NCBI RefSeq assembly: GCF_001194135.2
Contig: NC_069002.1
Location: 17,090,949 to 17,154,948, forward strand
DNA: 64,000 nt
Source of the DNA: Octopus bimaculoides
Taxonomy: Eukaryota
Direction: 5' to 3'
Part shown: positions 15,346-64,000 of the stretch, piece after piece
Layout of the letters: each line of letters begins with the position of its first letter
How positions within the stretch are numbered: the first letter of the stretch is position 1
The notes under the pieces: model-generated
What the model was told of the DNA's origin: nothing
What the model saw: the letters and a program-made list of their open reading frames with translations, nothing else
Database searches by the model: none
Program-made: the position numbers and the translations under genes

Positions 15346-15361
15346 TCAAAATGACACTGCG
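15346..15361 (+). promoter_or_regulatory. Antioxidant response element-like motif upstream of GCLM
   Basis: TCAAAATGACACTGCG fits TMAnnRTGAYnnnGCR; about 900 bp upstream of the GCLM ATG, inside a diverged SINE head. Confidence 0.35.
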
Positions 15362-16257
15362 CCTTGTATATGTTTCTTTCCGCTTCTTTGTCACTCACGC
15401 GACCTGTCTTCCTCTCTCCCCCCTTTCTGTTTTCCTTCTCTCACTCTTTAATAATTTTAAATCTTTGTATATGTGTATACGTGAGTGTTCTTGATATCTA
15501 TACTGCTTTTTTTTTAACCTCTTCTCCCCCTAATTCCTTTGATCTAACTGTATCACGCATTATTCTACAGCTTCACTTTTCCCATTTCATCCCCTTTTCT
15601 TGTTGCTTTTATCTTTATTGTTTTTTGTTTCATTTCTCTGTCATTAACTATTAATTATTGGCCCGATTAAACTCTGCCCTTCTCTCAATCTGATCTTTCT
15701 CCCTCTCTCTCTTTCTGCAACATCCTCAACTCATTCAATTCTCCTCCTCTAGGAGAGGGATTATACACTTTTTCTTTTATTTCATTCACCCCCCCCCTCT
15801 CTCTCCCTATTTTATACGTTTTCTTTCTGCTTTCTCCCTGTCTCTCATCAACATCCTCAACTCTTTAAATTATTTCACTCCGTCTTCGCTCTTACTCTTC
15901 TTCCTCTCTCTCTACTGTACATTCTTTCTCTCTATCCATATACGTTTTCTCCCCTCTTTTTGTACTATATACGTTCTTCCCCGCTATCTGCACTATACAT
16001 GTTCTCTCTCTCTCTCTGAACTGTACACATCTTCCTCTCTCACTTAACTATATTACAGCTGCCTCCTTCTCTCTTTTTGTTCCCTTCTCGTTCTTCCTCT
16101 TCCTTTCTCTCTCTATTTCAGGCCTATCCCGTTTACCTCTGTCTCATCTCCTCTGACCTCTTATATTGCAGCAGTCCCGACTGTCTAATTACACAGTGGC
16201 GACGCACACCATCGAAGCAATACTTCTGTCTATATCTTTCTCTCCAACTGCTCGCAA

Positions 16258-30567: not shown

Positions 30568-31285
30568 GTATCTAACTTACTCAGTTTATTGCTGGAGGTA
30601 CCTTTAACGTGTCAGTTGTTCACTTCCTGTGAACACACTTTGGCTCATATTCATCTAATTTTTTCACTTTTTCTAATTTAGACTTGTTAAATACTTTCTA
30701 GTGAACCATTCTGGCAACATTGTCGTGCCTTCAGTTGTATTCTGTCTGAGCCAATTTGCTGCATTCACTTAAAATATGCCACAATTTCACCACTCTGAGG
30801 AATGATTAGTTCACTATTTGATATAGTTTATTCGCAACACTTGTTCCTGAACTGCATATATCTAGGCTCTACTAAATATACCTTTGTTCCTGTCCTACAT
30901 ATATGTAGGCCCCTGGCTCCCTGTTTCAAGTCACTCTTTTTATAACCACATCCATCTTTTATCTGGATCTGTGTTACTTTGTATTTCTCTCTCAAGAACT
31001 AACCATGCATCTTCTTCACCATTCAGTTGTTTTCCTTCTTTGTTTCTGTCTTTCGTTTGTAATTTATCTGATCTTGATTGCTTTCTGTATGTAATAGACC
31101 TGCCTTCCTTACTTGCACTTCATGTCATTTATATATCATGCACCTGCCTTCCTGACCTGCACAAACAGTGCTTCCTTTGCAATGTTTATGTAACAAGCAC
31201 TTGCCTTCTTACTTGTACTAGTTGTGCTTCTTTTGTATTCTTTAAATTCCAAGCTTATTGTTATTATTATTATTATAATTATAGT

Positions 31286-33099: not shown

Positions 33100-34384
33100 A
33101 ATTATGTATATTATTTACATTTGTCGGATATTTGTCATCTTCTTTGTTGTTAACACAATGTTTCGGTTGATATACCCTCCAGCCTTCATCAGGTGTCTTG
33201 GGGAAATTTTGAACCTGGGTTCTCATTCCTAAGGTATTTTCCGATGTTATTATTATTATTATTCAGGTCACTGCCTGGAATCAAACTTAGAATCTTGGGG
33301 TTAGTAGCCCACACTCTTAACCACTACGCCATATGCTCACAATTACGGAGTGAATTTTAGGGTTTATAAATCTAATATTTTCCTATCCTTCCTTAATACC
33401 GGTTCCCATATGCTATTCATATCTGCACTCAGTCTGCTTAGGAGGTTGTGTCCTAGCATATGTGCTGCTTCTTTTAGTTTTCGTATTTTCCAGTGGTGTT
33501 CTCTGTCTATTCTGTTAACTTCATCCCACAGAGGAAGGTCATCTTCGCTTTTCCATACATGATCAGCTATACCCGATGTTTCAACATCTCCTCGTGTCAC
33601 AGCTTTGCGATGTTCCTCTACCCTTATTTTGAGGGGGTGACATGTTTCGCCTTTGTATAACCTATCACAGCTGCATGGGATGGAGTACACGCAGTTTTTG
33701 GTCATATTCTCTTCTATTGGTAGTTTTACCTGAAGGAGATATTTGCGAAGTGCTGTATTACTCTTGAATACTGTCCTGATGTCATATGGGCCATATATCA
33801 TTTGTATCTTTTTGGAGAGGCCTTTCACATAGGGTAGACAGACTGTAGACAGTTTATTGGTTTCACCCTCTCTTTTCCTCATAATTGCAGTAGATAGTAT
33901 GTTTTTGGGGTAGTTGTTGCTTAATAGATTGTTACTGAGCTTGATCATTTCTTCGTGGTGGGTATCGCGATCGCTACTTATATTCTTTGCTCGATGTTTT
34001 AGGCACTGAGCAATTCCTCTCTCTACACTGTATGGATAGTGAGAATTGAAGTTTAGGTATTGTCCAGTGAAGGTTGGCTTGTGGTATATGGATGTCCTGA
34101 ATCCATACTTGGTACGTGTTATTAATATGTCCAGGAAGGCTAGCTGATTGTCTTTTTCTTTTTCTATTGTGAACTGTATGGATGGCTTTATTAAGTTCAC
34201 ATGGTCTAACAGCACTTGGACATCTTCCTGGTGGGGCCAGAGAATAAAGGTGTCATCAACATATCGCAGCCATAGGCTTGGTTTTAGTGTTGTTGAGAAT
34301 TTGGCTTTAGGATCAACACCACTAAAACCAACCCTATGGCTGCAATATGTTGATGACACCTTTATTCTCTGGCCCCACCAGGAA
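33100..34384 (-). mobile_element. Penelope-like retroelement, 5'-truncated with inverted 5' end
   Basis: LWLRYVDDTFILW...FLDILITR...YHKPTFTGQYLNFNSH...VYSIPCSCDRLYKGET...EEHRKAV (RT plus GIY-YIG); hammerhead in the 3' tail. Confidence 0.92.
33151..33199 (-). ncRNA. Minimal type I hammerhead ribozyme in the Penelope 3' tail, probably mutated
   Basis: ACAC-CTGATGA-aGGCTG gagggtatat CAACC-GAAA-CA-TT-GTGT: stem I ACAC/GTGT, intact CUGAUGA and GAAA, one stem II mismatch, CG to CA change in stem III. Confidence 0.65.
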
Positions 34385-34699
34385 TTCTCTGGGTTTTGAA
34401 TAAATGTAACCAAAGCAAAATTTGAAGAAAATATTAGCCATTTTTCATACTTTCTAGGGGTAAGCAAATAGGAAATAACAGTTGCTACCCACAGACAAAA
34501 ATCATGCTACACAGTATTATCAGTCCAGAGACAAACAGCAATTAAAAATAACAGGCTTATTGGGGCTATTATAATTAGCAGAGCTCCAAATGACTTTACT
34601 ATCTAAAATATCAACAATATCAACTCAAATGTAAGAAGCCCCTCACAAATTTCCCATCAGCACTAAAAGGAATCACAGTTTTTAAAATCCCAGTGAGGA

Positions 34700-36400
34700 C
34701 ATATTTATATATAATGTGCTCCTTGATACAAATGAGTTTGAATAAACAATAGAATAGACATGGTTATTGTTGAAGGCACTTTCCTTTGCCAGATGTTAGA
34801 GTTATCCTGCATGTCAGGAAGACGGTGCTATTCAGTAAAGATTCAACTTGGTTCAAGGAATCTAACCCTGAGGGTTCCTTTGATGTAGCTATGGGAGTAT
34901 ATGACATCGTCGACGTTTGTGATCTTATCAGACTACATCCTGAACATGTTAGGGAAGAGGTTTCCTTCGGTCCTCTTTGGCCTGTACAGAGATGATGCCC
35001 TAGCCATCTCTAGAGGAGCCAATGGCCACACATTAGATAGACTTAGAAAGAACCTAATTAGTACCTTAGGCTCAATGGGTCTTAAGATCACCATTGAAAC
35101 TAATCTCACCAAAGTAGATTTCTTGGATGTTGTTTTAGATCTGGGCTCTGGTACATACAGGCCCTATCACAAGCCAAACGAGAGACTGCCTTATATTAAC
35201 ACAGCCTCCTACCACTCCTCTATAATTTTCAAGAACCCAGTGAAAGGTGTAAGCAAGAGGCTATCGAATCTATCCTCAAACCAAGATATCTTCAATGCCA
35301 CTGTCCCCTACTACAATGAGGTTCTGGCATCGAGTAGGTTTAAGGACCGCATCTCCTACATGCCTGGCCCTTGCACCAGGAAAAGGAAGTGCCACAGAAA
35401 TGTTGTTTGCTTTGCTCCACCCATCTCGCTCAATGTCAAGACTTGTGTGGGAAACATTTTCCTTAGATTGATAGACAATCATTTCACACACACACATAGA
35501 TACGGGCATTTATTTAACAGACACCACCTAAGAGTCTCCTTTAGTTGTGCACCTAACATAAAAAACATTTTAACAAGTACCCACTATACGAGGGAGGAAG
35601 CAGGTTGTTCTTGCAGAGTATATAATAACTGTCCAGTAGGAGGCCAATGCGAGGCTGAAGGGGTCATTTATGTGACTACATAATACCTAGAACTGCTATC
35701 TGCAATAACAGTAACATACCATCCAACAGCAATATTAGCAGATTAACCAGATCTCACACCAATACAATTGCCACACGCTGAGATAATAACCAGTCCAGGA
35801 CCACTGTCACAGAGAGCGTCACCAAAGACCCTGGTACCACCACCACCACAGATAATGAACAAACCATAGATACAGATAGAGTGACCATGACCACAATGCA
35901 TGTTACCACCAGTACAATTGCCACACCTAGAAATGATGACCAGTCCAGGACCAGCGACGTGGAAGAGGTATCCACCATTCCTAGTGCCACCACCACAGAT
36001 CATGACCAAATAATTATCTTCAACACCAATGGGATAACCAGCTCCACACCATATGTTACCAGGGATGCGAATAGGGCCACGTCCCATATTTGTAAATATA
36101 CTGGATCTGTGAGTACTTCTTTCAAGTGACATTTTCTTAACCACCAGTCATCCTTCAGAGTCCCAGAAAGACGATTTGTCACGTCCCTGGCCCACCATGT
36201 GTGGCACCTCAAAGATCAAGGGACCCTGTGTGCTATCAGGTGGAAATTATTTGATCGTCCGGGCCCATATATTAATGGATGTGGCCATTGCAAGATCTGC
36301 ATCATGGAGAGAGCCAAAATTCTTAAGGACTATATGAAACCTGATGCATTAAATAGTTGGAAAGAAGTGTTTTCTAAATGTATCCACTAGCACTACTTAC
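34700..36400 (+). mobile_element. Second Penelope-like element (different family) with an extended GIY-YIG spacer
   Basis: GLYRDDALAI...ITIETNLTKVDFLDVVLDL...YRPYHKPN (RT); NNCPVGGQC...GVIY, long insert, KYTG...SLAHHVWHLK...CKICIMER (GIY-YIG). Confidence 0.88.
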
Positions 36401-37383: not shown

Positions 37384-38124
37384 GTACATGTTCGTTTTTA
37401 TTCTATTTATCCTCATCAAGACCATCACCACTATCATCATCATTGTTTTAATGCCCACTTTTACTTGCTTGCATGTGTCAGATGGTATTTGTCGAGGCAA
37501 ATTTTCTTTGGTTGCAGAGACAAGATGTAAGCAAGATGAGTGGATGGATATGAATTGTTCTAAGTTCTAGTCTGTTTCAAGCATGCCGTTATTTCTGTGT
37601 AAAATATTGTATTCTAAATAGTCTCATAAACAAAGGGAAATTGATCTCCCATATGCTCAATGCCATATAATAAGAAATAAATAACATTTTCATTGAAAGT
37701 ACCTCAATGCTTAGAAATCAATTATATTATATTACATTTCCATTAAATATTTTGTCGATGTAACCATTAGAATTTGTAAAAGTACCTCTTAAGTTTTGAT
37801 TTTATTTTCTTCTCGTATGCCCTATATTTGTAATTATTTTCATATCTTACTAACATTTTACTTCTCCTCCATAGAATATGGTATTCTAACCTCTCATACA
37901 TTCTCTTATACCATATAGTCCATTCCAGTATTCAGTGTCTCATGATTCCAGTATTCTTACCTTTCATACATTCTCACCAATCAGAATACTGGAATGAACT
38001 TATAAGTCCATTCCAGTATTCTGTATCTTGTATTTCTACCACTCATACATTCTCACCTATCACCATTCCACATATTCCAGTATTTTTACCATTCATACAT
38101 TTTCAGCTCTTATCATAATCATCA

Positions 38125-46245: not shown

Positions 46246-49200
46246 TTCTTTCTTAAGGGTTGATAAAGTAAAGCTCCAATCAAAAACTGGAGTTGGTTAA
46301 ATAAGCAAGTACCCTGTCCCACCTCATTTCTGGCTTTGTGCCTATATTGTTATTGTTTACAATAAATTTACAATTTGATGAAATTGTATCTGTTGAAAGA
46401 CCAAATTCAGTGTAAATGAAATAGTTGTCTAATATGATACTGCTGTTGTTATTTAAGTGTTTATTTTCATTATCGTTATAATAATAACAATAAACATGCT
46501 TTGCTTGTTATTATGGTTGTTGGCAAAATGATGTATGCATAGTGAATGGGTTTTTATGTGCAGAAATATGTACATTTTGTGAGCATGGTTCACAATTAAG
46601 TGAATATTTTCTGTTAAGAGATTAAAAAAAAAATTAGTATTGATTGATAAAATTTATATTTTGAATTTTATAAAATTATATTTTAGAAAAAAAAGTTTTT
46701 TTTGTTGTTTTTTTTTCACTTTCTATTTTGTCTTTCAGCCAACTTTGGGTGTTTTTTTTTCTTTGTGCAATTTTTTTTTCTTTGTTTTTTCTTTACCATT
46801 TATTGTTGGTGCCAGGTGCAACAAGGATATTTTCAATTTCTGAAAGAGGAAGGGTCACCTCATAATTTTAGGGTGCTGTGCAAGAGTATTTTGGAGAAAG
46901 GTGCTCCCTGAAGTACTTATGGGCTTTTACAGGCCTCTTTTTTCTCACATAGGCTCTGGTTGGAATAGAAAAAGCCGTGCTTGTGACGTTTTTATTTCTT
47001 AGTGTATTCCATCCCTATGATATAAAATTGAGATGAATGAAGTTAGAGAAGAAAAGGTTTTGTTTAAATTGTTATTTAGCCCTGGAACATCCTTGATTCC
47101 GCAGTCCTATCATCATCCCACCTTTGTTAACAATATAATGTATCTAGGCCTATATCCTAGATCCACAAATTTCTGTCACATTTTAAGATGATAAAGTGCA
47201 ATTTGAAGGAGTTTGGCTGCCATTTCTAGCAGGTCAAGTGACAACGTCATACCCATCATCATCATCATCGTTTAACGTCCGCTTTCCATGCTAGCATGGG
47301 TTGGACGATTTGACTGAGGACTGGTGAAACCGGATGGCAACATCAGGCTCCAATCTAAATTTGGCAGAATTTCTACAGCTGGATGCCCTTCCTGACGCCA
47401 ACCACTCAGAGAGTGTACCCATACTAAAGAAAAAAGGTAAAACCAAAAGTGAAAAGGAAGTTTCAGAAGGCTGTTGGATCTGAGGAATAAGATTTGAACA
47501 TGTTTAGGAAGCAAATGTTTAGTAATGATTCTATTTAACCATTTCCTTGTCTTGCTAATATTTCTTGTATACTATTCAATTTCCTGTCGATTAACAATAT
47601 GCGGGGATCATGGCCACCTGAAACATGCGAATGACAGGATGAAAGTCTGGAGTCTATGGCAGTGGATTCTATATTAGTAGAATCATTAGAAGACAATTAT
47701 TTTTCACCTATTCTGGGCTAATAAAGTACTAGTCAAGTACTGATATATAATCAACTGTTAGCTGGAACACATAACCTAGTTGTTGGGTAAAGGTCTAGTT
47801 ACCAATTGACATATGTCTAGGTACATCTACAGGCACATCCAAAAGGATGCACCACATAACAATCAACACTATATCTGAACACTAACATTGCATTTGGACA
47901 TCCAGCCATTAGAAACCATGCCAGCACAGAAGACTGATGTTAAAAGATGATGACAATTACCATATAAGGTATTAATATTTACCAACAGTAATTCAGTCGA
48001 TGTTACCAAATACAGTAATGCTGTTTGTCAGATATATTGCCTTTAAAACTTAAACATACAGGTTCAAATTTTGATGAAGACCATCTACTATAAAAATCCT
48101 CTCACTAACTTAGCACTTTTTCATTGGTAAGGACACTGTAAATAGTACCATGGTTATCTTACTCCCTCTCTGTATGTGTACAAAAGCGTATATACTACCA
48201 AGTATTTCATTAGCTGTCAGTGATAGACTTATTTACTAAATTTTCAACTCTAAAATATCAGTTTCTTCTTCTTTTTTTTTTCTTTTTTTTTTTTTTTTTT
48301 TTTTTTTTTTGGTGGGGTGGGGGGGTACTTTGTATACAAAGTACACCAGTAATTATATATATTTTATCTCTGGTGCACCATGAAGTAAAATTATGGCTAA
48401 CTTCATGTTTTGAAGTGATCAAAATTAAAATCCTCCTGCAAAATTTCATGTTATGTTCAAAAGAGATTAATAACTACAATGTTATCTCACTAAACTTTTC
48501 GTTATTTTAAAAATTAAATAGTATATTACAAGTCAGAGTCTAAAAAAGTATAAAATGATGCAGTAAGCTACATTAATTTAACAAATTGTGTTCACAGTTA
48601 TCAAGAAAATCTGATAGATATCCTAGACTGGTGTTTGATCTAGCAGTATCCTAAAGGCGAGGACATTATTCTGTGTGCTTCAACTTAGCTGTTGAAATGA
48701 TGTACAGGTTTCAGTTGCATTATGGAACCAGACAAATCTTGCCTTATTGCGTTGTTCCATAAAATGAAACCTATTTTCTGGTATATATGGAAGTTCATGA
48801 AGATGACATAAGTAAAAGAATATGTTTTGCATTATGGAATTCCACATTATGACAAGATTTTCAGGAACACAGTGCTTCTGTAATCTGTGGGTTTCCATTT
48901 TAGATTTTCTCTCAAAATGAAAAACCATTAGAATTGGCCCGCTTTTTCTTGAATGATTCATCTAATCCTTTACTTGTTTCACCAATTTCTTCTACATTCA
49001 GAGATGAGAACTCCAGTGTTGCAGTGTGGTTGCATGAGCTGCTAGAAGTAGCTGTCAGATCTCCCATCTCATCACATCTTACAATTTACAAAACAAGAAC
49101 AACACATTAAACAATGCAGCCCAACAAAAATTGTGCCTGAATTAAAAATGGGACAGCCATGGCTGGAATATCTTTGAGCATAAATCAAAAGTAATCATTT

Positions 49201-49841
49201 GTTGGTGGACTTAATCATTGCTAGATTGAATGTCATCACCTAGTTTCTGGAGACCTTCATGCTGTGTAACTAGAGAATATCAAATTGACAGAATTCATTC
49301 TTCTAGAAATTAAATCCACAGGAAGAGATAAAACCCTGGTTTCTTCAAAATCTTGCAAAATACTTAATTTGACAATGCTTCCAATGCTACTTTTGGAAGT
49401 GAATTTTACCATTTTACATTACCTACCTACCCTAAATACAAATAAGGAGAACTGGGCTTTTAAGAGCCCTTGGCCACCAATATAAATTCTCCAATATATT
49501 TTAAATTAAAAATTAAATAAAATTTCAGACCAAATATGTTAACATTTTCCAATTTAATTCCCACACAAACACACACACAAGTTTCAATGTATCATCATCA
49601 TTATAATGTCTGCTTCTCCATGCTTCTATGAATTCAATGGGATTCATTGAGACAAAGTTTCTATGGCTGGATGACTTTCAAATGGTTAACTCTCACCTGT
49701 TTCCAAGCAAGGTAATAATTCCTCCATGATCAGACATGTTTTCACAGAAGACTGGATATGAAAGAGACCACTTGTATGACAATGTTGTTTACAACAGTCA
49801 TGTGTCATCAGGAAAAGGGTACACACGCATATGTCTGTGAT

Positions 49842-50165
49842 TTAAAAATCATAACATTTCTTCAAGATGTCTTCTACAATGTTCATATCCATTTTTGTCA
49901 CAATCCGAACATTACTTGACTTGCCTGTTATGTTTCTCCAATCTGGTACCATTTGACCTCTGGTTATAGATCCATTCAGTTCTACTTCTGCATAAAGTTC
50001 CACACTGTCTAACACACACTGATCATTAATGATAGCAGCCACAGCGAATTCATCACACATTATATATCTTTTGTGTTCCTTTATCCGATTCATTGTACTT
50101 TTGAAGATTGTTTGTATAAAGGCAGTTTTCTTGCCAGGATGTGATAGCAGATTCTCAAGAAAAGA
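49842..50165 (-). CDS. Nucleoside hydrolase duplicated terminal exon, distal copy A
   Basis: ttttcag|SFLENLLSHPGKK...YIMCDEFAVAA...VELNGSITRGQMVPDW...KCYDF*; 324 nt, phase 0, intact; ATTAAA signal at 49553-49558. Confidence 0.7.
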   Translation of the reverse strand, partial: SFLENLLSHPGKKTAFIQTIFKSTMNRIKEHKRYIMCDEFAVAAIINDQCVLDSVELYAEVELNGSITRGQMVPDWRNITGKSSNVRIVTKMDMNIVEDILKKCYDF

Positions 50166-50562
50166 CTGAAAAAAAAAATTCAAAAGAGATAACAGAAATG
50201 AGCTTCTTGCATGAAGTGCACTACAAGTGGTCAGGAAAGGGTAAAAGAGAGGACAGAAAGCAGCCATAAGTCAAAGAAAGACAGCAATGAAAGTAACAAA
50301 TATATACTTTGTACACAATATACAACACAAAAAGACTGAAAAATAAACAGTAAAAGAGCCAAAAAAGGGAAGGGTATACAGGTATGTCAGGAGTAGTGTT
50401 GGTGAATTTTGGGAAGCATGAAATCTTGGAAGGCTGTGTAGTGTCCTGACAGCAAACAACTGACATAAGGAGTCTGTTTTTGTTTTTTTTTTAATTGTGA
50501 GTGTATAGAAATTTTTTCATAAGTCATAAATACTGAAATGATTTTCAACTTTTTTCTATATA

Positions 50563-53084
50563 CTAGCAGTGCATCACTGTGTTGCCTGGATGTTATGATT
50601 ACAGCCACATTGTATAATTTGTTTCTTATGGGCAGAATCAGCACACAAGGAGTGTGAAACAATCAACTCTTCTTTATAAACTTGTTTTTCGGTCATTTTG
50701 TGATGAACAATGCTGAAATTGTTGACACCAAAAACATGTAGAATGACAGCTTAGATTAGAATGAAATCCTTATGTTGCCCTCAAAATGACCTAGACTTAC
50801 AGGTTTAAAAAATTGGATGACGTATGAGGATGTATAGGTATCCACATTGCAGAAAGTAAGGTACATGGAAAGAAAGCTGCTTCATTGTGAAAAGCATCAT
50901 CTCTAATGCTTGGGCAGACTGCACACTTCAACATGTGTTAAGTGAAATGCTTTTGGGTAAACTATGTTTTGCATAAGCCAAGTATTGATAGAATAAATAT
51001 ACAAGTCATCTGCACTGCTAACTTGAGAGCATGTGACATATAGTTGTCCATGAGAAAAGCAGGGTATTTGTAAATTGAGACCCATAATTTTTAAAGTTTG
51101 ACCCTGGGTTTTGTTGATCGTGATAGCAAAGCATAATTACACTGGGAACTGGAGGCGTTTGAATTGAAATGGCACATTTGAGGGAATGAGGGGCATGCAT
51201 GGAATATATGTGATCTCTTCTCGATGACAGCCAGCAATAATGGTTGCTTGTAGGACATGACTTGTCTTTGTAGTTACAGTCAATCTTGTACCATTGCATA
51301 GTTGTGGTGGGTCGAAATTCCTCAAGAGCATGATAGGTGCACCTTTCTTTAGGAGCAGCTAATGCAGTGGCAGTCCTGTGGGTTGTAGAGGGTTGAGAAA
51401 TTCAACTGGATACTCAACAGTAGCATGTTCATTGATGGTAGTATCAATGGAAACAAATGTTGAAGCATCTCCAGGTAGAACGTGGAGGAGTTCATGGATT
51501 ATTTTATCAATGCTTTCATTCCAAGGTGTTAAAATAGCTCTCTCTGTGAACCATGCTATGTTTTTGAAGTTGTCTTGCAATGTGAGAAATACCTTTTCTT
51601 TAAGCTCGGCCAATCTAGACACCACATGTCCATATTGCAGTACATGCTGTTGCAGGGTGTTATTCAATGGTAAGGCACCATTTTAAATTTATAGAAGTTG
51701 ATGAAAGAATTCCTCAGCTAAGGGGTTGTAGAGGCGAGCTTGCATATTGCTGCTTAATGAAAGCTGACAAACAAACCTCCACAGAGGTGAAAACTTCAGA
51801 CATACATAGATGTCATCAGCTCACGTATCCCGTGGTATGACTGGTAATATGACAGAAATCCCCTGCGAGGACAACAGTTAAGCGCCCCCTCCCCCCATAA
51901 TGGCAGTATTGTTTCTAATATTCCTTAGTGACTTATCTAGGGCTTCTAGTGCACCACTGTGTGCCATTGTGCGTTCATCCCAGTCAATAAGTGTAATTTA
52001 GAGCAGAATTTCTGCTGTCAGCGATTGTTTTGAAATATTATATATTTGGGCATTGCTGAAGTGAGTTTTCTTGAGCACAAATAGAGGCAGTTTTTTTTGC
52101 GGCCCTTGTTTGTAGAGATAAATGAGAATGTCTTCGTTTTGGTGGCATGGCTGAAAAGAGTGAACGATTAAGGAACATACAAGATGGAAGACATAGCAAT
52201 TGGAAGTTGTGCATTGTATAATTTGATTTTTTTAGTAACGAATGAAAAGATGTGGAAAAATTCATATGTCAAGTTGTATACTGTTATTATGAGAAGAAGC
52301 GGTAAACTGTGAATGATTTGGCTACGTTCTGTCTTGATAAGCATAATGCATTCTGTTAGTTGATATATAGTGGAGTGGATTAATGGCGTAATGCAAGTTA
52401 TTGTTTGTCCAAAAGTTAAGAGGTGGGGGGGGGTACAATTTGCATGAAAGTGATTTATGTTCTTAAGAAGGATCACAAACTATGTACTGTTTCATGGAGT
52501 AAAAAGGGGTTAATATGATTTTGCCCAGAAATCATGTTTTCAAAATTATAATTTCCCCCCTCCCCATCGAAATTTCCTAATTTTTAACTGTTTTTCGAAT
52601 TTTGTTTTTTATGCACGTGGTAAAATACACAGATTACGAATGTGGCAAATATAATTTGTTTGTTTTTGACATGCTAGAAACAACAGGTAAATGACAGGAT
52701 TTCTGAGATAATTTCCTTGTAAGTTTAAATGGAAAATCAGGTTTTGGAATATGCTCATCACAAACAGGAATGACAGAATAGGAAATAGTTATTTCCATAG
52801 AATTTGAGCAGTAATTTAGCGCACAGCAAAAAATAACATAATTCATACAGAACTTTAACTCTGTGTGTGTGCCAAAGGAAGTTATCAAAAGATTCAGTAC
52901 TATTTCTGCTACCAACTAAACTTTATGTTCATTGACATATTTCCATTACAAAATTTTAAAATTATAATCTTTTCCATAACTCAACTCTCGTAAATATTTT
53001 ATACAATGAGGATGACGTCACATTTTCTATATGAGAAATGTCAAAATTGGCACACACATACAAACTCTCTTTTATAGATATAGA
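50563..53084 (-). mobile_element. Internally deleted Helitron with both termini
   Basis: 5' A|TCTATATCTATAAAAGAGAG at 53084 and 3' ...ggcaacacagtgatgcactgCTAG|T at 50563. Broken Rep/Hel ORF: MPPKRR N-terminus, AILTP, MLLRNFDPPQLCNGTRLTV, PCFSHGQLYV (Pif1-like helicase). Confidence 0.9.
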
Positions 53085-54087
53085 TAACTGTGCCCAAGGG
53101 TAGTAAAGGTATTGACTTCCTAGAAATGGTCAAGAATGTAAGCTGGATCCTGTAGGAATGAAAAGAGGAATCTGCATGGTTGAAAAATTCACTTCATAAC
53201 AACCTTCTTGATAATTTCCATCTATTAAAGTCCACTCATAAGGACAAAGTATCGGTCAACTGAAGTCTATGGTGGAAGGCTTTTGCTCAAGATGCCCTGC
53301 AGTAGAATAGAGGGAAATTTATCTCTCATCTGCTAAATAGCATGAAACCAGAGCTACATAGCATTTTCTTTCAAAGTACTTCGATGCTTAGAAAAGCAGT
53401 TATAATTACATTTCCATTAAATATTTTGTCTATGTATAAGGATTTGTAGAAGTACCTCCTAATTTTTTATTTACTTTCTCCTCTTATACTCTATCTTTGT
53501 AATAATTTTCATATCTTACACACATTCTACTTCTTCTTCATAGAATATGATATTCTAACTTCTCATACATTATACCATATAATCCATTCCAGTATTCTAT
53601 GTATTCTCGTTCCTCTGTAAATTAAATACGCAAGAAGAGATTAAACTCTGGTTTCTTCAAAATTTTGCAAAATACTCAATTTGACAATGCTTCCAATGCT
53701 ACTTTTGGAAGTGAATTTTACCATTTTACATTACCTACCTACCCTAGATACAGATGAGGAGGACTGAGCTTTTAAGAGCCCTTGGCCACCAATATAAATT
53801 CTCCAATATATTTTAAAATAAAAATTAAATAAAATTTTTGACCAAATCTTTTAACATTTTCCATTTTATTCATACACAACCACCTTCACACACACACACA
53901 CACTTGTTTCAATGTATCAACATCATCATCATTATAAAGTTCACTCTTCCATGCTTGCATCAGTACAATGAGATTCATGTTTTCCCAGAAAACTGGAAAT
54001 GAAAGAGACCATTTGTATAACAATATTGTTGTTTACAACTGTCACGTGACATCAGAAGGTTATGCATGCACATATAATGTCTGTGGT

Positions 54088-54414
54088 TTAAAAATCATAA
54101 CATTTCTTCAAGATGTCTTCTACAATGTTCATATCCATTTTTGTCACAATCCGAACATTACCTGGCTTGCCTGTTATGTTTCTCCAATCTGGTACCATTT
54201 GACCTCTGGTTATAGATCCATTCAGTTCTACTTCTGCATAAAGTTCCACACTGTCTAACACACACTGATCATTCATGATAGCTGCTATAGCTAGTTCATC
54301 ACACATTACTGCATAGCGTTGGCGTGTCTCCACCAGTTTCATTGCACTTTTGAAGACTTTTTGCATAAGGGCAGTTTTCTTGCCAGGATGTGATAGCAGC
54401 TTTTTAAAAAAAGA
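54088..54414 (-). CDS. Nucleoside hydrolase terminal exon, proximal copy B
   Basis: tttatag|SFFKKLLSHPGKK...YAVMCDELAIAA...VELNGSITRGQMVPDW...KCYDF*; 327 nt, phase 0; AATAAA at 53865-53870. Confidence 0.88.
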   Translation of the reverse strand, partial: SFFKKLLSHPGKKTALMQKVFKSAMKLVETRQRYAVMCDELAIAAIMNDQCVLDSVELYAEVELNGSITRGQMVPDWRNITGKPGNVRIVTKMDMNIVEDILKKCYDF

Positions 54415-54720
54415 CTATAAAAAAAAATTCAAATATGATAATAGAAATGAGATTTTTGTATAAAGTGGTTGTAAAAAAGGGTAAAAGAAGGGAGAGAAAG
54501 CAGTCATAAGTCAAAGAAAGAAAAACAATGAAAGTGAGAAATACATGGAAAGCACACAGGATAAAACATGAGACAGAAAAGCAAATAGCAAAACAGCCAT
54601 AAAAAGGAAAGGGTACATAGTTATGTCAGGTGTAGTGTTAGTGAATTTTGGGAAGCATGGAATCTTTGAAGGATATAGTGTCTTGACAGCTATCAACAGA
54701 CATAAGGAGATTATTCCATA

Positions 54721-55587
54721 CATGGTCTGATCAATAAGTATCCGGACTGTTGCCATAGTAACAAAGCTAAAGCACACAGAGTGAAGCCGCTTGGTACAGA
54801 CTGACTTTGAACTCTGCTGTGCATGAGCACTAAGTTTTAACATTCTAGCTCACTTCCATTGTTTACAGCAGTGCTTGGAAGGAAGGTGTGTAGCATGTGA
54901 AAGTTAAGCAGAGAGTCTGCATCAAATTTTGCCAAAAGCGTGGCAATACCTGCTCAGAGGCCTATGCAAAAACGCCAAGTTTTCAAAAAGTTTTCATTGT
55001 TCTCAGCAGAATAGAGGAGATCTTGTGCAAGTGAAACCCAAGTGTCTTTTTGGTCAGCTGAAAGTAGTTGCGGCACAAACTTGGCAGACACATGTCTCAT
55101 ACTCAAATTTTCATCGATAATGAACTGAAATGAACTGTAAATAATCTGCACATCCTCTGATAACTCAAGGATCGTGATTCGACGATATCCCCTCACAGCG
55201 ACACACATCTGCAATGTTTTTCTGCTTTCTGCTGATTGCAGGTCTCCCAGAGCATTCATCAATATCAATATTTTTTTCAGCCATCTTGGAAACGTCTGAA
55301 CCATTTGTACACTTGTGTGCAACTCATACACTTTCTGCAACTTTGTGTAGACCTCTGAGCAGGTATTGCCATGTCAACTTTCTCTGTTGTGGTCAATGTG
55401 ACGATCACATGCTACACACCTTCCTTCCAAGCACTGCTGTAAACAGCAGAAGTGAGTGAGAACATCAAAACTTACTGTGCATGCACAGCAGCAGGGTTCA
55501 AGGTCAATCTTTGCCAAGCGGCTTCACTCTGCATGCTTTAGCTTCATTACCATGGCAACAGTCTGGATACTTGCTCATCAGACCTTG
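54721..55587. mobile_element. Mariner-derived foldback element (two 5' ends in inverted orientation)
   Basis: TIRs catggtctgatcaataagtatccggactgttgccat / atggcaacagtctggatacttgctcatcagaccttg; about 200-bp inverted arms; mariner N-terminal remnant on minus (RRITILELSE...MRHVSAKFVPQLL). Confidence 0.85.
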
Positions 55588-55888
55588 CATATGCTGAAAT
55601 GATTTTTTAAAAAATTTTTTTTTTATAAGTGTGTCTAAGGGCAGTAGAGGTATTGACTTCATAGAAACGGTCTAAGTTGGATCCTTTAGGAATGAAAAGG
55701 GGAATCTAGCCTGGCTGCATGGTTGAGAAATTCACTCATGGTCTACTCACAAGGACAAAGTATTGGTCATCTGAAGTCTGTGGTGGAAGATTTTTACCTG
55801 AGACACCCTGCAGTAGAATCGAAGCTAATTGATAACCACACCAACAGATCTGTTCCCATTATTTGATTCCTGAATTTCTGATACTTAC

Positions 55889-56025
55889 TGTAGGTTGCTT
55901 TAAATCTTCGCATAGTTCCCATGTTATCAGTGTTATTGGACAAGAAAGTTTCTTAAGAACAATGCTTGCTGCTTCTGGGTCATTGTAAAAGTTGAATTCA
56001 GCACTTCTTGATACGTTGCCAACTC
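55889..56025 (-). CDS. Nucleoside hydrolase penultimate exon
   Basis: ttccag|(G)[45 protein letters not shown]|gtaagt; 137 nt, phase 1/0; GN...AEFN...DPEAA family motif. Confidence 0.95.
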
Positions 56026-56159
56026 CTGGAATATATATGACAGAAAAAAAAAATCTGTTTAAGTCACTTCATAGCTTTTAGTCACTTTGTAGAGTTGTCA
56101 TTTTAGATTTATAGCCTGCAAAATGGTTTGGTTATTCAACATCCATTTTCACAATATAT

Positions 56160-56455
56160 CGAGCGAGATCGTTGCCAGTGCCCCTGGACTGGCTCTTGTG
56201 CGGGTGGCACATAAAATACACCATTTTGAGTGTGGCCATTGCCAGTACCGCCTGACTGGCCTTCATGCCGGTGGCACGTAAAAAGTACCCACTACACTCT
56301 CGGAGTGGTTGGCTTAGGAAGGGCATCCAGCTGTAGAAACTCTGCCAAATCAGATTGGAGCCTGGTGTAGCCATCTGGTTTCACCAGTCCTCAGTCAAAT
56401 CGTCCAACCCATGCTAGCATGGAAAGCGGACGTTAAACGACGATGATGATGATCT
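56160..56455 (+). mobile_element. Young GC-rich retro-repeat ending in (gat)n (RTE-tail type)
   Basis: Near-identical copies at 60505-60858 and 63698-63995, partial minus copies at 47255-47415 and 43140-43195; older relatives at 8510-8690, 12545-12720, 58040-58230. Confidence 0.85.
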
Positions 56456-57619
56456 TGAGTGGGAAGGTTTTCCCATATTTGGATATTTAGACATCGTTGA
56501 AATAATTATGTGAATATAATTACAAAGTACTCAAGCACAAAGAAGTTTTTGTGTATGCAGTTGTGAAAGGTGTTGTCTTAATACATAATTATAATAATAG
56601 CAATAATGGGCATATGTTATACAGTGCTCAGATGCACAACTCATCCGGAAAGGAGTAAAAGAAGGGACAGAAAGAAATGTCTAAGTCAAGAAAGACAGCT
56701 ATGACAGCCAAAATTGCATGCATAGTACACAGGATAAGACACATATAGTGAACAGTAAAAGGAGCATAAAGAGGAAAGGATGCACATCAGGAATTGTGTT
56801 AGTGAATTTCAGGAAGCAAGATGTATTTGAAGGATGCAGTGTTGTGACATAAAAACTGATCCATGATTCAACATTTCTGAGTATGAACTCTACACTTAAC
56901 TCCAACTGATGTCATAACATGGTTTTTCTAATATTCCTGTAATGAAATTGATGCATATACTTCACCCTACTTAAAATACCAACATGTCACAATCAAATGA
57001 AAAAATCCCTACATGTCACAGGCCAATTGAGGGAATCAGCTTTCTAGAAATAGCAGCCAACTTGTTTTCAAATCAGACCTTATTGTTTTGAAAGGGACAA
57101 ATTGGTCTTGGGTGCCCAGTGTCTGGGAAACAGAAGTGATGGTCACAAGACACTTTTAATCATATGCATGTTTTATCAGTGTTTTTTTGAGGCAGAAAAA
57201 AATGAACATAATGTTTAGGCACAGGTGTGACAGTGTGGTAAGAAGCTTGCTTCCTAACCACATGGTTTCAAGTTCATTCCCACTGCATGGCACCTTGGAC
57301 AAGTGTCATCTACTATAACCTCAAGCCGTCTAAAGCCTTGTGAGTAGATTTGGTAGACGGAAACTGTTCCCCACTACTGCTTGAGAATCAACAGAATAAG
57401 TACCAGACTTTAAAAAAATACATCCTGGGGTTGATTCATTCAACTAAAAATTCTTCAAGGTGGTGTTCCAGTATGGCCACAGTTTAATGACTGAAACAAG
57501 TAAAAGATCAAAGATAACAAAATGAATATAAAATACAGAATTAAGGTGGATTAAAATAAGGTAAATAAAAAAAGAAAAGAAAAATATCAAAGTAAGATTG
57601 AAAACAAATGTAAGATTAC

Positions 57620-57736
57620 CTTTATAATTTCCACCCATCATATAGCAACTCTTGAGTTTTGAACCAAAATCTGGATCTAAGGTAATTGCAGTGGCTATAT
57701 TAGTAAGAGGAGCTAAGCAAACAAGATGTAACTCCC
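57620..57736 (-). CDS. Nucleoside hydrolase internal exon
   Basis: tttcag|(G)ELHLVCLAPLTNIATAITLDPDFGSKLKSCYMMGGNYK(G)|gtaatc; 117 nt, phase 1/1; PLTN and MGG motifs. Confidence 0.95.
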
Positions 57737-59769
57737 CTGAAAAGTAAAAAAATGCAAAATCTTTATATTTTAGTACAAACACATGAAACAGCAGCGGTCA
57801 CATATTTAAGATGTGTACATTTTAGTTTTTTAATATATTTCTGCTAGAATGTAGAAGGCAATCAGTGCTGCGGAATCCTGTTTGGGAAAAATTTTCTTCC
57901 GACAGGCTTTGTGTGTGTGTGTGTTTTACACATTGAGTAGAAGTACAAGAAATGTTAAGTGAATACAGAGAAATTTTGCAGTGAACTTCTTTAATGTTCC
58001 AGAGTAAAGGAGCACACACATGTACATATACAGATAATCATCATCATTTAACATCTACTTTCCATGCTGACATGAATTGGGCAATTTGAGTGGATCTGGT
58101 GAGTCACAAGGCTACAATGAGCTTCAATGTCAGCTTTGACAGTTTTTACAGTTTGATGCCCTTCCTAACACCAACCACTTTACAGAGTGTGCTGGGTGCT
58201 TTTTGTGTGTGTGAAGCTATCAAGTAACTTGCAAGACAGAAGAAGAACAAGGAGAGGAAAAGGGAAAAAGCTCACACTGCTAAATGGGGAGTATTTGAAA
58301 GGGGAAAGTGGTTTCATACTGAATGTTGAAAGGCAAAAGTAAGATTAAGGGACAGGCACAGGCGTCTTGCTATAAAGGAGATAGATGGCTAACCTCTATT
58401 ATATAGGGAGGTAGATGGGAATAGTAGAGGAGATAAAGGAAAGTAGTGATGGAGTGCCAAAGCAAACTCTCCAGCTACAAGGTGACCATAAGAGAAAATA
58501 TGGACAGTGGGTTACGGGAGATGAGTTGAGAGGAGTTGTGGGTGGAGATGAGTGTAGTGAGTGATGAACAAGAGTGGAGGTGTGGTTGAGGGAAATACCA
58601 GGAAGGAGAGGTGTAAGGTGATAGATAAGAAAAGTGTTAAGATTGGGATAGAGCAAAGAAAAGAACTGGCACTGGCATTCTGTTGGTTACAACAACAATG
58701 AGGGTTCCAGTTGATCTAACCAATGGAACAGTCTGCTTGTGAAATTAGTGTGCAAGTGGCTGAGCACTCCACAGACACACGTACCCTTAATGTAGTTCTC
58801 AGGGAGATTCAGCATGACATAGTGTGTGACAGGACTGACCCTTTGAAATACAAGTACTACTCTTTTTTGCCAGCTGAGTGGACTGGAGCAACAAGAAATA
58901 AAATGTCTTGCTCAAAGAACTTATGAACTTACGATTGTGAGCCGAATGCCCTAACCACTAAGCCACATTTCTTTCACCAATGAAAAGAGATTGGGTTAAA
59001 GGCACAAAAGCAGGTGACTGGTGGGAATAGTATGGGCTGAGATGATAATGAGATATGGAAATGTTTCCAGGGGTGGTGGGAGTGGAGGTGACCAGAAGGG
59101 AGGGTATGTTGTATGTGCCAATTCTGTTCTCAGCAGCCAAGTAATGCTATAGATAAAGGAGTGATAAGCATTAGGGGAGAAGTATTGGAAGAAATGCTTG
59201 ATGGGACAGAGAGAACAGAGGGGTGGGCAGAGTTACTGCATGTACAAGCGTACCTAAGTAGTTTTAGGTTATCACCTTTGCTATGATGCTTGGGTCTCCT
59301 CGAGCACAGTAAATAACCAATTATCTAAATCCACTGTTATCTCTTCTGTAAGGTTCAGCATCCTGAGATTAACCTTCAGTACTCTGTCCCATGTTTTGAG
59401 GCAAGTGAAATCGGAATCGAACTAAATTTAACGACTGGCCCCCATGCCAATGTCTCCTCCATTGGACACTAAACTCTGCTTGCGAAGACCTGTTGGGACA
59501 AGCGAAAGTGAAATGTGCGTGTATACACATACACATATATTCATACATCCATACACACACATATATATGTATTTATGTGTAATTAATATTATATAAGTAA
59601 GGGTAAATCCCAGCTGTTTCCTCTTGAAGCGTATTCCAATATTACAATCAATATGTATCCATAGTTGGTGCTGTATGTGAGTCAAGATACATATTAAGAT
59701 TGAGAATTATGGAAAAACTATTTGCAGAGCTAATTTATAATAAAACAGGAATATTCCCTGTCTGAAGTG

Positions 59770-61200
59770 TTTCTAATAGGAAACTCTTTACATGTTGTTA
59801 AGGTTATCTCTACAAATTTTCTGTAGAAATTATAGCCAGCACTAATTTTGTTACAATGCTTCATATATATCTCTGGCACCTGATGTACACAATGAGATCA
59901 AAAATGAAAGACAGGTAATGGGTATATGACATATTTCAGGAGTTTTTGCCTCTTCATCAGCACCTATCCAACCCATAGTGGAGGTGCAATGGCCCAGTGG
60001 TTAGGGTAGCGGACTCACGGTCATAGGATTGTGGTTTCGATTCCCAGACTGGGCGTTGTGAGTGTTTATTGAGCGAAAACACCTAAAGCTCCACGAGGCT
60101 CCGGCAGGGGATGGTGGTGAACCCTGCTGTACTCTTTCACNNNNNNNNNNGTGTCATGCTGAATATCCCCCGAGAACTATGTTAAGGGTACACGTGTCTG
60201 TGGAGTGCTCAGCCACTTGCACGTGAATTTCGCGAGCAGGCTGTTCCGTTGATCGGATCAACTGGAACCCTCGAAGTCGTAAGCGACGGAGTGCCAACAA
60301 CATCCAACCCATTAACCATCCACAAACTCATTGATTTAATAGCCACTAAATATAGTGGTGTAATGCTATTGTGTATACCAATTCATGTATTAAACACATT
60401 CCTGGAAGCTGGTTTGTAAATATCAGTGACTTGTAGGGACACAGCATTTTGTTGTGCAACCATAATACTCTACAAAGTATATCAAACGTTTTTATAAGTC
60501 ATCGTGATGCCACCTGTGCCCAGCGTCGCCTTTCTGGCACTTGTGCCCGCGGCATGTCTAAGGACTTTCGAGCGAGATCGTTGCCAGTGCCCCTGGACTG
60601 GCTCTTGTGCGGGTGGCACATAAAATACACCATTTTGAGCGTGGCCGTTGCCAGTACCGCCTGACTGGCCTTCGTGGCACGTAAAAGCACCCACTACACT
60701 CTCTGAGTGGTTGGCGTTAGGAAGGGCATCCAGCTGTAGAAACTCTGCCAAATCAGATTGGAGCCTGGTGTAGCTATCTGGTTTCACCAGTCCTCAGTCA
60801 AATCGTCCAACCCATGCTAGCATGGAAAGCGGACGTTAAACAACGATGATGATGATGAATACTATGTTCTAGAGTGTTAGCAGTGCTATCACATCTCTTG
60901 TTAAGATTATCTCTACAGATTATCTATAGAAATTATAGCCCGCACTAATTTTGTTACATTTCATATATCCAAGATGCCTGATGTAAACAACAACAAGACT
61001 GAAGGCGAAAAATAGGTAATAGGAATATATGACATATTTCAGAAGTTTCTGTTCCTTCATCAGCACTCATCCAAACCTTCAATCATACACAATAGCCACT
61101 TAAATATAGCAGTGTAATGTAATTGGATATTCCAGTTTTACATATTAAACGCATTCCTGGAAGCTGTTACATAAATATTGATGACTTGTAGGGACACCAT
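59770..61200. repeat. Intronic direct duplication of a ~330-bp unit, copies split by retro-insertions
   Basis: 59770-59976 plus 60312-60450 aligns with 60868-61200 (ttatctctaca...tagaaattatagcc.gcactaattttgttaca...atatgacatatttcag...cattcctggaagctg...gacttgtagggacac). Confidence 0.8.
59977..60301 (+). mobile_element. tRNA-derived SINE, family 3, with 11-bp target-site duplication
   Basis: A-box/B-box-like head (tggcccagtggttagg...ggtttcgattccc); TSD atccaacccat at 59966-59976 and 60302-60312; minus copies at about 58665-58960 and 6870-6965. Confidence 0.88.
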
Positions 61201-62346: not shown

Positions 62347-62521
62347 CTGGGTTTTGGTTCACAAGATGAATTAAAGCATTTACAGCATGTTCCTTCTGAA
62401 GGTGATCCAAACCCGGTGCTTCACTGTCTGCAACATCTCCAAAACCATCTTTGCCATGATAATATTGGGCATGCTGGACTGTTTGCATTAATGGATGCTT
62501 ACAACCTTGAAACACTGGAAT
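62347..62521 (-). CDS. Nucleoside hydrolase internal exon (most upstream one in the window)
   Basis: gtttcag|IPVFQGCKHPL...YHGKDGFGDV...EHAVNALIHLVNQNP(G)|gtaaat; 175 nt, phase 0/1. HGxDGxGD and EHAVxAL motifs; the DxDxxxDD exon was not found in the window. Confidence 0.95.
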
Positions 62522-64000
62522 CTGAAACAATATTTTGTTATAAGAAAATGAGAGATCATTTTGCTGGATATGTGCAGTTACTGTTCACCTTATACATATG
62601 TAAATCTAAACTGATGACCATAAGGAAAAACATGGGAGAAGAAGGAATTCCAGGGGCTTCACACTCAGGAAAGGAAGGATTGAATATATAGTGGTTAAGG
62701 TTGGGAAGGAAGGATGGGTGCAGTATGAATGATGGAGTGCGCCAGGTGGGTTTTGATGGAGGTGATACACTATGACCTAGTTCCAACAAGCAGATGCCAT
62801 TGTAATTGTAGTAGAAAGGTATAGAGGGAATAGCTACAGAAAGTCTACAGGCTAGAGGTAGGAGTTAATTGGTGAGTAATTAGGAGAGGAAAAGAAGAAC
62901 AACATCCCTGGGCCTTTGGTGGGATGAAAGAAGAAAGTTAAACTGAACGTTGATACTTGAAACAGAGCATACTCTACTAAAGATACCCAAGAGTCAGGTG
63001 GTGGTGTTAAACTAGGTTATCAATTAAATCTATCATCTATGACCAGGTATAATCACCCTGATTAAGCTTCCATGCCATTTCTATCTTATAAGGTTTGGGT
63101 CAACTTCAAATTATGGCAGAGGATATTTGCTCAAGGCACTGCGCTGTGGATGTCAATCTTGGAACTATATGACTGCAATACATTCAACCATACATTCACC
63201 CATCTGTGTGTATGTACACACACACAAACATACATATATGCATATATACATGCAACCATACAGTTCCAGCCTAATGAAAATTTTCAGTGAAAAAAAAAAA
63301 CGTTTGTTACCATCATCTCTATATGGTTGCTTGGCTTTCTAAATATAGCAACAGTGCTTTACTGTATTTAGTGTAGTAGTTATATAGCTGTACAACAATA
63401 AAGTGGAGTTTTAAAAGTCTGCCTCAAGCCTACAGGCTCAAGTGAGGCCAGAATTTATTTGAATGTTCAAGGAGTTTAGACTGAAAGTACAAGATTCCCT
63501 TTTGTACCTGAACAGGTCACCAATCTGTCACTGTGTTAATCTCCAGCTATCGCTAGTAGTAATTTTCAACAATGGGAAATGAAATGCTTTTCTCAAGGAC
63601 ACAACATGCCACCTGGTCCAGAAACTGAACCCATGATATATTAATCAAAAACTCAACACTCTAATCACTGGGCCATGCATCATCATCAATATACATGAGT
63701 GAGATCGTTGCCAGTGCCGCTGGACCGGCTCCTGTGCAGGTGGCACGTAAAATACACCATTTTGAGCGTGGCCGTCGCCATTACCACCTGACTGGCCCTC
63801 GTGCCGGTGACACATAAAAGCACCCACTACACTCTCGGAGTGGTTGGCGTTAGGAAGGGCATCCAGCTGTAGAAACTCTGCCAAATCAGACTGGAGCCTG
63901 GTGTTGCCATCCGGTTTCACCAGTCCTCAGTCAAATCGTCCAACCCATGCTAGCATGGAAAGCGGACGTTAAACGATGATGATGATGATGATGACTACAT

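Follow-up and report, generated by a model that had tools for sequence, protein, structure and literature searches.

A nucleoside hydrolase gene of Octopus bimaculoides with two tandemly duplicated, alternative last exons

Alternative terminal exons in known systems and in the octopus gene

Genes with alternative terminal exons that arose by tandem duplication form an established class (PMC9013439). In the Drosophila genes pipe (pip) and PGRP-LC, tandem homologous terminal exons lie behind a set of shared exons and one of them enters each mRNA to give the protein an alternative C-terminal module; in human UGT1A, tandem alternative exons for the substrate-binding part of the enzyme are joined to common exons (PMC9013439). 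Here we describe a nucleoside hydrolase gene of the IU-NH family (PF01156) in a stretch of 64,000 nucleotides (nt) of the Octopus bimaculoides genome (assembly GCF_001194135.2, contig NC_069002.1, positions 17,090,949 to 17,154,948), which is called the window below and whose coordinates are used throughout. On the minus strand of the window one penultimate exon is followed by two homologous terminal exons, a proximal exon B and a distal exon A. We consider it likely that a tandem duplication in the octopus lineage gave this gene two alternative last exons that are joined from one donor.

The octopus gene shares with pipe and PGRP-LC the order of shared exons followed by tandem homologous terminal exons, but it has two copies while the Drosophila genes have more, and the choice among those is reportedly made through competing RNA structures (PMC9013439). 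In contrast, a duplex search over about 190 nt of candidate docking region in the octopus gene gave nothing above shuffled controls, and each octopus copy carries a poly(A) hexamer. The resemblance to UGT1A is likewise partial: the alternative exons of UGT1A are first exons with their own promoters and with established specificities, whereas those of the octopus are last exons with their own poly(A) hexamers, and a difference in specificity is plausible rather than established. The locus is a further member of a group that is already known, in a family where this organisation has not previously been discussed, and it introduces no new mechanism. A literature search found no paper on cephalopod nucleoside hydrolases or on the paired last exons of this gene; one review shows XP_014774668 merely as a leaf of a tree.

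The exons of the gene within the window, in the order of transcription, and the signals that belong to the last two are as follows.

62347-62521, minus strand: IU-NH coding exon (IPVFQG...NQNPG), bounded by the splice sites cag and gtaaat, an exact match to the annotated proteins P0001 and P0122
57620-57736, minus strand: IU-NH coding exon (ELHLVC...GNYK-G)
55889-56025, minus strand: penultimate exon (VGNVS...KQPT), common to all isoforms, with the donor gtaagt and ending in phase 0
54088-54414, minus strand: terminal exon B, 108 codons and TAA, used in XP_014774668 and XP_014774690
53865-53870, minus strand: AATAAA poly(A) hexamer of exon B
49842-50165, minus strand: terminal exon A, 107 codons and TAA, used in XP_014774676 and A0A0L8IEV3
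49553-49558, minus strand: ATTAAA poly(A) hexamer of exon A

Canonical splice sites are present at all of these exons. The penultimate exon (56025-55889) stops at a codon boundary and exons A and B both begin in phase 0; the acceptor of exon B reads ...tttttttttatag and that of exon A ...ttttttttttcag. Neither terminal exon shares its acceptor, stop codon or poly(A) hexamer with the other. An initial reading made from the letters of the DNA without database searches (the sequence-only reading) had described both last exons as open, in phase 0 and followed by AATAAA and ATTAAA hexamers, and all of this was confirmed in the sequence. The two exons, of 324 nt (A) and 327 nt (B), are 80% identical as protein (tblastn of one copy against the other, E=1e-58), and the differences are unevenly spread: of the alignment columns, the first 51 have 19 differences plus a gap and the last 57 have 2 differences. 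A third copy of the exon was not found in the window by tblastn. The peptide of exon 1 has no match in the window either, which places the exon or exons with the DTDPGIDD motif upstream, past position 64000.

Public annotation (RefSeq and UniProt) already contains the gene with two terminal exons, so that the databases anticipate the idea. RefSeq lists five isoforms for O. bimaculoides, of which X2 uses exon A and X1, X4 and X5 use exon B; XP_014774676 is an exon A isoform and XP_014774690 an exon B isoform. In UniProt, cluster listings show four models of the gene from the O. bimaculoides genome project, and the O. bimaculoides entry A0A0L8IEV3 is identical to the window exons joined to exon A. 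A construct of the upstream exons and exon B gave an exact match to XP_014774690.1. Isoforms of the A type and of the B type are both annotated in O. sinensis and O. vulgaris as well, and the proposal of the sequence-only reading that one gene makes two proteins through alternative terminal exons is supported by the gene models of three species. An exact look-up of isoforms X4 and X2 in assembled public reads gave no match, and a homology search with the exon B isoform returned cephalopod proteins of the IU-NH family but no octopus fragments beyond the annotated proteins.

The remaining RefSeq isoform, X3, makes use of a splice site which lies inside exon B.

54160-54165, minus strand: cryptic 5' splice site CCAG/GTAATG; the exon part ends at 54162

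Joining 54162 to the exon A acceptor at 50165 shifts the frame and leads to a stop after three codons (...NITGKPVFS*). This B-to-A spliced model is X3 (XP_014774683) in RefSeq and A0A0L8IDR8 in UniProt, and its product is truncated, being without the last strands and the C-terminal helix. The acceptor it uses is the same distal acceptor at 50165 that the sequence-only reading had named for a junction check. The sole two residue differences between the 3' halves of the exons (PG in B, SS in A) sit at this cryptic donor, and the G that makes the GT of the donor is an A-to-G change seen in exon B of O. bimaculoides only.

Taken together, these features suggest the following mechanism. A tandem duplication of about 2-4 kilobases (kb) would have copied the last exon together with its acceptor, its 3' untranslated region (UTR) and its poly(A) signal, so that the single donor at 55889 may be joined to either of two acceptors, the proximal tatag at 54414 or the distal ttcag at 50165. 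Joining to 54414 would give an mRNA that ends at the proximal poly(A) site and encodes isoform B; if exon B is skipped, or if transcription runs through before splicing commits, joining to 50165 would give isoform A. Since exon B has no regular donor, the choice between the exons would be mutually exclusive, and the cryptic donor in exon B appears to show the consequence when a donor arises. Gene conversion holds the 3' halves of the two exons alike, while the halves that encode helix alpha8 remain distinct and evolve fast. Weaker proximal and stronger distal acceptors are the usual arrangement for regulated choice. The weaker proximal tag and the stronger distal cag of this gene would fit regulation of the exon choice and do not by themselves show it.

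The tandem duplication, its age and gene conversion

A repeat search over 47000-58000 gave a series of direct repeats, spaced by about 4.25-4.3 kb from start to start, and BLASTN of the region against itself joined them into two blocks. The first pairs 54709-53607 with 50472-49295 at 83-84% identity and the second pairs 55833-55625 with 53322-53084 at 70%. Individual repeat pairs are 92% identical (49295-49556 and 53607-53868), 96% identical (49831-50062 and 54077-54308) and 81% identical (50064-50218 and 54313-54467), and several further intron blocks are 89-91% identical. The units and the elements found with them are listed here.

53607-55833, minus strand: duplication unit B (proximal), with an intron segment, exon B, 3' UTR and flank
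49295-53322, minus strand: duplication unit A (distal), lengthened by insertions, a Pif1/Helitron-like fragment among them
51137-51331, minus strand: short open reading frame (ORF) with a match to the Pif1 helicase 2B domain (PF21530, 25.9 bits), a Helitron-like fragment in the enlarged intron of unit A, within a region collinear with O. sinensis
53323-53606, no strand assigned: dispersed repeat of 284 nt at the junction of the units, not part of the duplication

The sequence-only reading had placed the duplication at 49306-53318 and 53618-55818, which is right to within a few bases, and the repeat alignment upheld its statement that the copy includes the last exon, the acceptor, the 3' UTR and the poly(A) signal and leaves out the penultimate exon. 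Unit B ends at 55833, 56 nt short of the penultimate-exon donor at 55889. The units differ in length through separate insertions in each of them. The junction repeat has a second copy at 37646-37933 (80.6% identical) and is absent from the O. sinensis locus; since this dispersed repeat is missing from that locus, units A and B must at first have been adjacent. An ORF at 54954-55340 in the intron of unit B has no Pfam match.

A segment of about 230 nt that lies just upstream of both acceptors (54476-54709 and 50223-50472) recurs at 56636-56859 with 70-72% identity, and the latter copy is kept in O. sinensis at 90%. This copy was considered as a third or older unit and rejected, as tblastn gives no exon there and partial copies lie at 27539-27662 in the window and at other places in the O. 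sinensis locus. The segment looks like a dispersed repeat family and not like a third duplication unit.

The orthologous locus was examined in other cephalopods, as the sequence-only reading had proposed. On the O. sinensis chromosome (L001) the order and spacing are the same, with the penultimate exon at 24826-24960, exon B at 26381-26707 and exon A at 30668-30991, and a haplotig of this species (L004, 99.75% identical) has the same tandem layout. The whole region is collinear between O. bimaculoides and O. sinensis at 89-90% identity, the older insertions included, and the frame, acceptor and stop codon of exon A are intact in three species. An AATAAA homologous to the exon B hexamer occurs in unit A of O. 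sinensis. The duplication is real and conserved and does not stem from mis-assembled haplotypes.

Argonauta hians and Acanthosepion pharaonis have a single last exon, with no second one within the 10 kb searched downstream. Like exon A, these single exons are without the one-residue insertion of exon B. In a four-way alignment that covers intron, the 5' exon half and the 3' UTR, the informative sites group A with A and B with B (10, 14, 8 and 7 per 75 columns, vs 0), and the non-coding divergence is 17-28% between paralogues and 7-12% between orthologues. Because the sites group by orthology and paralogues diverge more than orthologues, the duplication is clearly older than the split of O. bimaculoides and O. 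sinensis. These comparisons date it to the octopus lineage, apparently after the Argonauta split, unless Argonauta has lost a copy.

The evolution of the two exons was assessed with dN and dS (nonsynonymous and synonymous divergence) by the Nei-Gojobori method. As a baseline, exons 2-4 have a dS of 0.082 and a dN/dS of 0.33 between the two Octopus species. The 3' halves of the exons behave differently from the rest of the duplication, and the segment concerned is given here.

49841-50036, minus strand: gene-conversion tract in exon A, with its partner at 54087-54282 in exon B

Over the 196 columns of this tract the A and B copies of O. bimaculoides have 3 differences, as against 17 (8.7%) in O. 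sinensis and 17-28% divergence in the flanks. In the 3' half, the O. bimaculoides copies have 0 synonymous differences at 36 synonymous sites, while dS between the O. sinensis copies is 0.20, and not a single site in the tract groups by orthology. These observations mark recent gene conversion between the 3' halves in O. bimaculoides. The dS from O. bimaculoides exon A to O. sinensis exon B is 0.087, vs 0.245 to O. sinensis exon A, and conversion probably ran from B to A, a direction that is favoured but not decisively so. The 8.7% divergence of the tract in O. sinensis suggests that there was earlier homogenisation too.

The sequence-only reading had set 19 residue differences in the first part of the exon against 2 in the last. 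Its counts are exact, but conversion, by homogenising the O. bimaculoides 3' halves, has inflated the contrast: between the A and B residues of O. sinensis there are 24 differences and one gap in the 5' part and 8 differences in the 3' part.

The 3' half of exon A bears the mark of purifying selection and is constrained as coding sequence. Its dN/dS is 0.19 when O. sinensis exon A is compared with O. bimaculoides exon B (p=0.002 for a ratio below 1) and 0.30 when the two O. sinensis copies are compared (p=0.017). Given a ratio of about 0.2 at p=0.002, exon A is probably no dead copy. The 5' halves give another picture: A vs B within species has a dN/dS of 1.2-1.6, the orthologues of B have 0.64, and the orthologues of A have 19 nonsynonymous changes and 1 synonymous change (p=0.064 against neutrality; Fisher p=0.012 against the upstream exons), with 17 of 50 residues changed between the species. 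In O. sinensis, dN between A and B is 0.31 in the 5' half and 0.06 in the 3' half, a ratio of about 5 at equal dS. The 5' halves follow orthology, have remained distinct and change quickly.

Helix alpha8 and the encoded enzymes

Both predicted proteins match the family profile over its full length, with 293.7 bits for isoform A and 293.0 bits for isoform B against PF01156 (cut-off 34.2, profile positions 1-293 of 297). The N-terminal DXDXXXDD calcium-binding fingerprint is present as DTDPGIDD in P0001 and P0122, annotated proteins that agree exactly with the window in their other exons. The last calcium-coordinating Asp (Asp242 of C. fasciculata) is encoded in the duplicated exon, as Asp243 in A and Asp244 in B; its column is invariant in 52 homologues and aligns to the HD of Leishmania IU-NH. 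AlphaFold2 models of the two isoforms predict the nucleoside hydrolase fold with mean confidence (pLDDT) values of 94.8 and 94.2, and Foldseek aligned the isoform A model to solved nucleoside hydrolase structures with TM-scores of 0.85-0.91.

The A and B proteins share residues 1-205 and the terminal exon begins at residue 206. In the models the terminal exon is predicted to encode a short helix (205-212), a long helix (217-236, alpha8), a short linker and Cys242-Asp243 (243-244 in B); after these come another helix, the last strands and the C-terminal helix. In the alignment with Leishmania IU-NH, Tyr225 and Tyr229 of that enzyme fall on the long helix, and the octopus Cys-Asp aligns with its His240-Asp241. 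From helix alpha8 two Tyr side chains reach into the active site, and the C-terminal part of the helix, disordered in the absence of a ligand, takes on order on binding of a base mimic (PMC8910321). It also tunes activity on purines vs pyrimidines, as the placing of two Tyr in alpha8 of YeiK raised kcat/KM for inosine 50-fold (PMC8910321). The sequence-only reading had started from the premise that the segment before the H241/D242 position lines the nucleobase pocket. That premise is sound, and the divergent half of the exons encodes alpha8 and the linker to the catalytic position.

The work on E. coli YeiK/RihB (Tyr at 223 and 227) is a close parallel to the octopus isoform pair, in that residues of alpha8 alone shift the efficiency on purines vs pyrimidines (PMC8910321). 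The difference is that YeiK was altered in the laboratory and is a group I enzyme with a His acid, whereas the octopus isoforms have neither Tyr. The positions of Tyr225 and Tyr229 are occupied by Thr and Ile in isoform A and by Ala and Val in isoform B, and the Thr (A) vs Ala (B) at the first of these is kept in both O. bimaculoides and O. sinensis. Isoform A retains the family-majority Phe221 and Ile225, where isoform B has Leu and Val; with these two residues, and without the one-residue insertion, exon A is the more outgroup-like of the two. Isoform B has one extra linker residue before the Cys, and the confidence of its predicted structure drops to 80 there. It is plausible that the isoforms differ in substrate preference or kinetics, since alpha8 lines the base pocket.

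The position of His241 is Cys in both isoforms, within an MCDE motif that is found in both exons and in all cephalopod orthologues, so the catalytic residue is not switched between the isoforms. Group III nucleoside hydrolases have Cys at the His241/Trp260 position before the last Asp (PMC8910321, PMC10526354), and by this criterion the octopus enzyme falls in structural group III. The C. elegans nucleoside hydrolase (PDB 5MJ7), also of group III, is alike in having Cys for His241 before the last calcium-binding Asp: the alignment places '..yCDEiava' of the worm against 'vmCDElaia' of the octopus, and the Foldseek TM-score is 0.89. The second active-site Cys of group III, which is usual and not obligatory, is present in the worm (GC in 'vhGCvtv') but is Asn41 in the octopus (GN in 'vqGNvpv') in the phmmer alignment. 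We know of no alternative last exons described for the C. elegans gene.

A separate protein in assembled public reads (P0006, 439 aa) was observed to be a decapodiform-like IU-NH homologue of 55% identity with an N-terminal fusion to a FLYWCH-type zinc-finger region (PF04500). Either a chimeric contig or a genuine fusion could account for it.

A similar pair of last exons occurs in the same family outside the cephalopods. In the bivalve Mya arenaria, RefSeq isoforms X1 and X2 of an IU-NH protein are 99.5% identical before the exon boundary and 25% identical after it in the family alignment. The gene on CP111016.1 (L005) is laid out as follows.

12907-13038: penultimate exon
14795-15142: last exon with an AG acceptor, giving RefSeq X2, with Val at the Cys position
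15217-15567: last exon with an AG acceptor, giving RefSeq X1, with Ala at the Cys position

Like the octopus gene, this gene has two tandem last exons after one penultimate exon, at the same exon boundary. Unlike the octopus copies, those of Mya are 29-31% identical, which makes their duplication either far older or an independent event; a gap of about 75 nt separates them, in which no poly(A) hexamer was seen, and the Cys position itself differs (Ala vs Val). Patella vulgata X3 and a P. caerulea protein (P0022, P0028) show the same pattern, with Ala vs Cys, in the proteins alone. A tblastn search for an older second exon type in cephalopods, made with Mya, Patella and Haliotis last-exon peptides against the window, O. 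sinensis, Argonauta and Acanthosepion, matched only known exons. Duplication of the last exon may be recurrent or ancient in molluscs, and the Mya and Patella pairs modestly raise the odds that two versions of the module are useful.

Alternative explanations, neighbouring features and significance

Several observations weigh against the two-exon interpretation put forward above. The use of A and B in transcripts rests on gene models made by others, and some of these models are artefacts, because the O. sinensis protein P0124 (XP_036355901, on haplotig L004) opens as exon B and continues as exon A (SFFEKLLIHPGKKTA/FMQKIYKST...); its join falls where the two exons are identical, lacks GT-AG and has no canonical splice explanation, and the protein is probably an alignment, assembly or model artefact from paralogous exons. 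A search for docking/selector RNA pairing, between about 190 nt of candidate docking region in the intron behind the penultimate exon and the stretches that precede both acceptors, brought up no conserved pairing: duplex energies against shuffles gave z = -0.1, 0.3, -2.1 and -0.7, with no conserved helix. The Cys-Asp is the same in both isoforms and most A/B differences are conservative. The excess of nonsynonymous changes among the A orthologues is not significantly above neutrality. Furthermore, no part of the family is more variable than alpha8, whose mean column entropy is 2.61 bits, compared with 1.67 bits for the upstream exons and 2.28 bits for the 3' half of the terminal exon, and its fast change may reflect relaxed constraint rather than adaptation.

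The strongest competing explanation accepts that both exons are used and holds that the isoforms are functionally equivalent, the pair being a neutral redundancy in which alpha8 drifts as a weakly constrained surface helix. The low conservation of alpha8 in the family fits this, as do the equal Pfam scores and model confidence of the two isoforms, their identical catalytic Cys-Asp and the single exons of Argonauta and Acanthosepion, whose 5' halves are also more divergent than their 3' halves. Set against it are the A-type and B-type 5' halves, which have stayed distinct in both species despite homogenisation of the adjacent 3' half, and the fivefold ratio of 5' to 3' dN in O. sinensis at equal dS. 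The independent tandem pair of last exons in the Mya gene also suggests that the module has repeatedly been kept in two versions. We regard equivalence as a serious alternative that is nevertheless unlikely to be the correct one.

Another explanation is that one exon, most likely the distal A, is a decaying or rarely used pseudo-exon, annotated merely because it is open, so that a single isoform matters. The fast change of its 5' half between species is compatible with neutrality, and recurrent conversion from B could hold its 3' half open without selection. However, the 3' half of O. sinensis exon A, in which no recent conversion is seen, has a dN/dS of about 0.2-0.3, significantly below 1, and the reading frame, acceptor and stop codon of A have survived in all three species. 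Exon A retains the family-consensus F221 and I225 that are changed in B; several independent annotations use it, and one model splices B to its acceptor. We therefore hold a pseudo-exon to be quite improbable, and two functional alternative terminal exons to be very likely.

An assembly artefact, through mis-assembled haplotypes (the refutation named by the sequence-only reading) or through collapse or expansion, might be suspected in a draft assembly with eight N runs in the window. It is excluded for practical purposes, because no N run falls inside 49295-55833, the units differ by 16-30% in their non-coding parts and carry different insertions, and the chromosome-level assembly and haplotig of O. 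sinensis have the same tandem order.

Two functional terminal exons could also be part of a broader pattern. The molluscan IU-NH last exon may be a self-contained specificity module (alpha8, the leaving-group residue and the C-terminal sheet) that was duplicated more than once, in Octopus, in Mya arenaria and probably in Patella, and is selected by splicing; in Octopus, diversifying selection on the distal alpha8, together with conversion that evens out the structural half, would have led to two enzymes with different riboside preferences from one gene. This generalisation is tentative, and we would not expect all of it to hold.

The rest of the window is of another character. Past the end of the gene, its downstream part seems rich in repeats and shows no further obvious host gene. 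Its long ORFs (22200-23569, 26430-27322 and 33364-35683) are transposable-element-like by eye, being reverse-transcriptase-like at 22200-22991, mariner-transposase-like at 26430-27322 and a retroelement-like pair at 33364-35683. Rfam gives a marginal tRNA match (58893-58972, minus strand, 29.9 bits vs a gathering score of 29) within the intron that separates the exon at 62347 from that at 57736; it may be a tRNA-derived short interspersed element. Copies of an element of about 250 nt, alike in translated sequence, lie near 56135-56380, 60485-60790 and 63650-63920.

A natural pair of isoforms with residues 1-205 in common, which differ mainly in alpha8, lends itself to the question of how this helix governs the choice of base in an enzyme of the Cys type (group III). 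The locus further illustrates, in a small space, mosaic evolution within one duplicated exon, of which one half has been homogenised by gene conversion while the other has stayed distinct and evolves fast.

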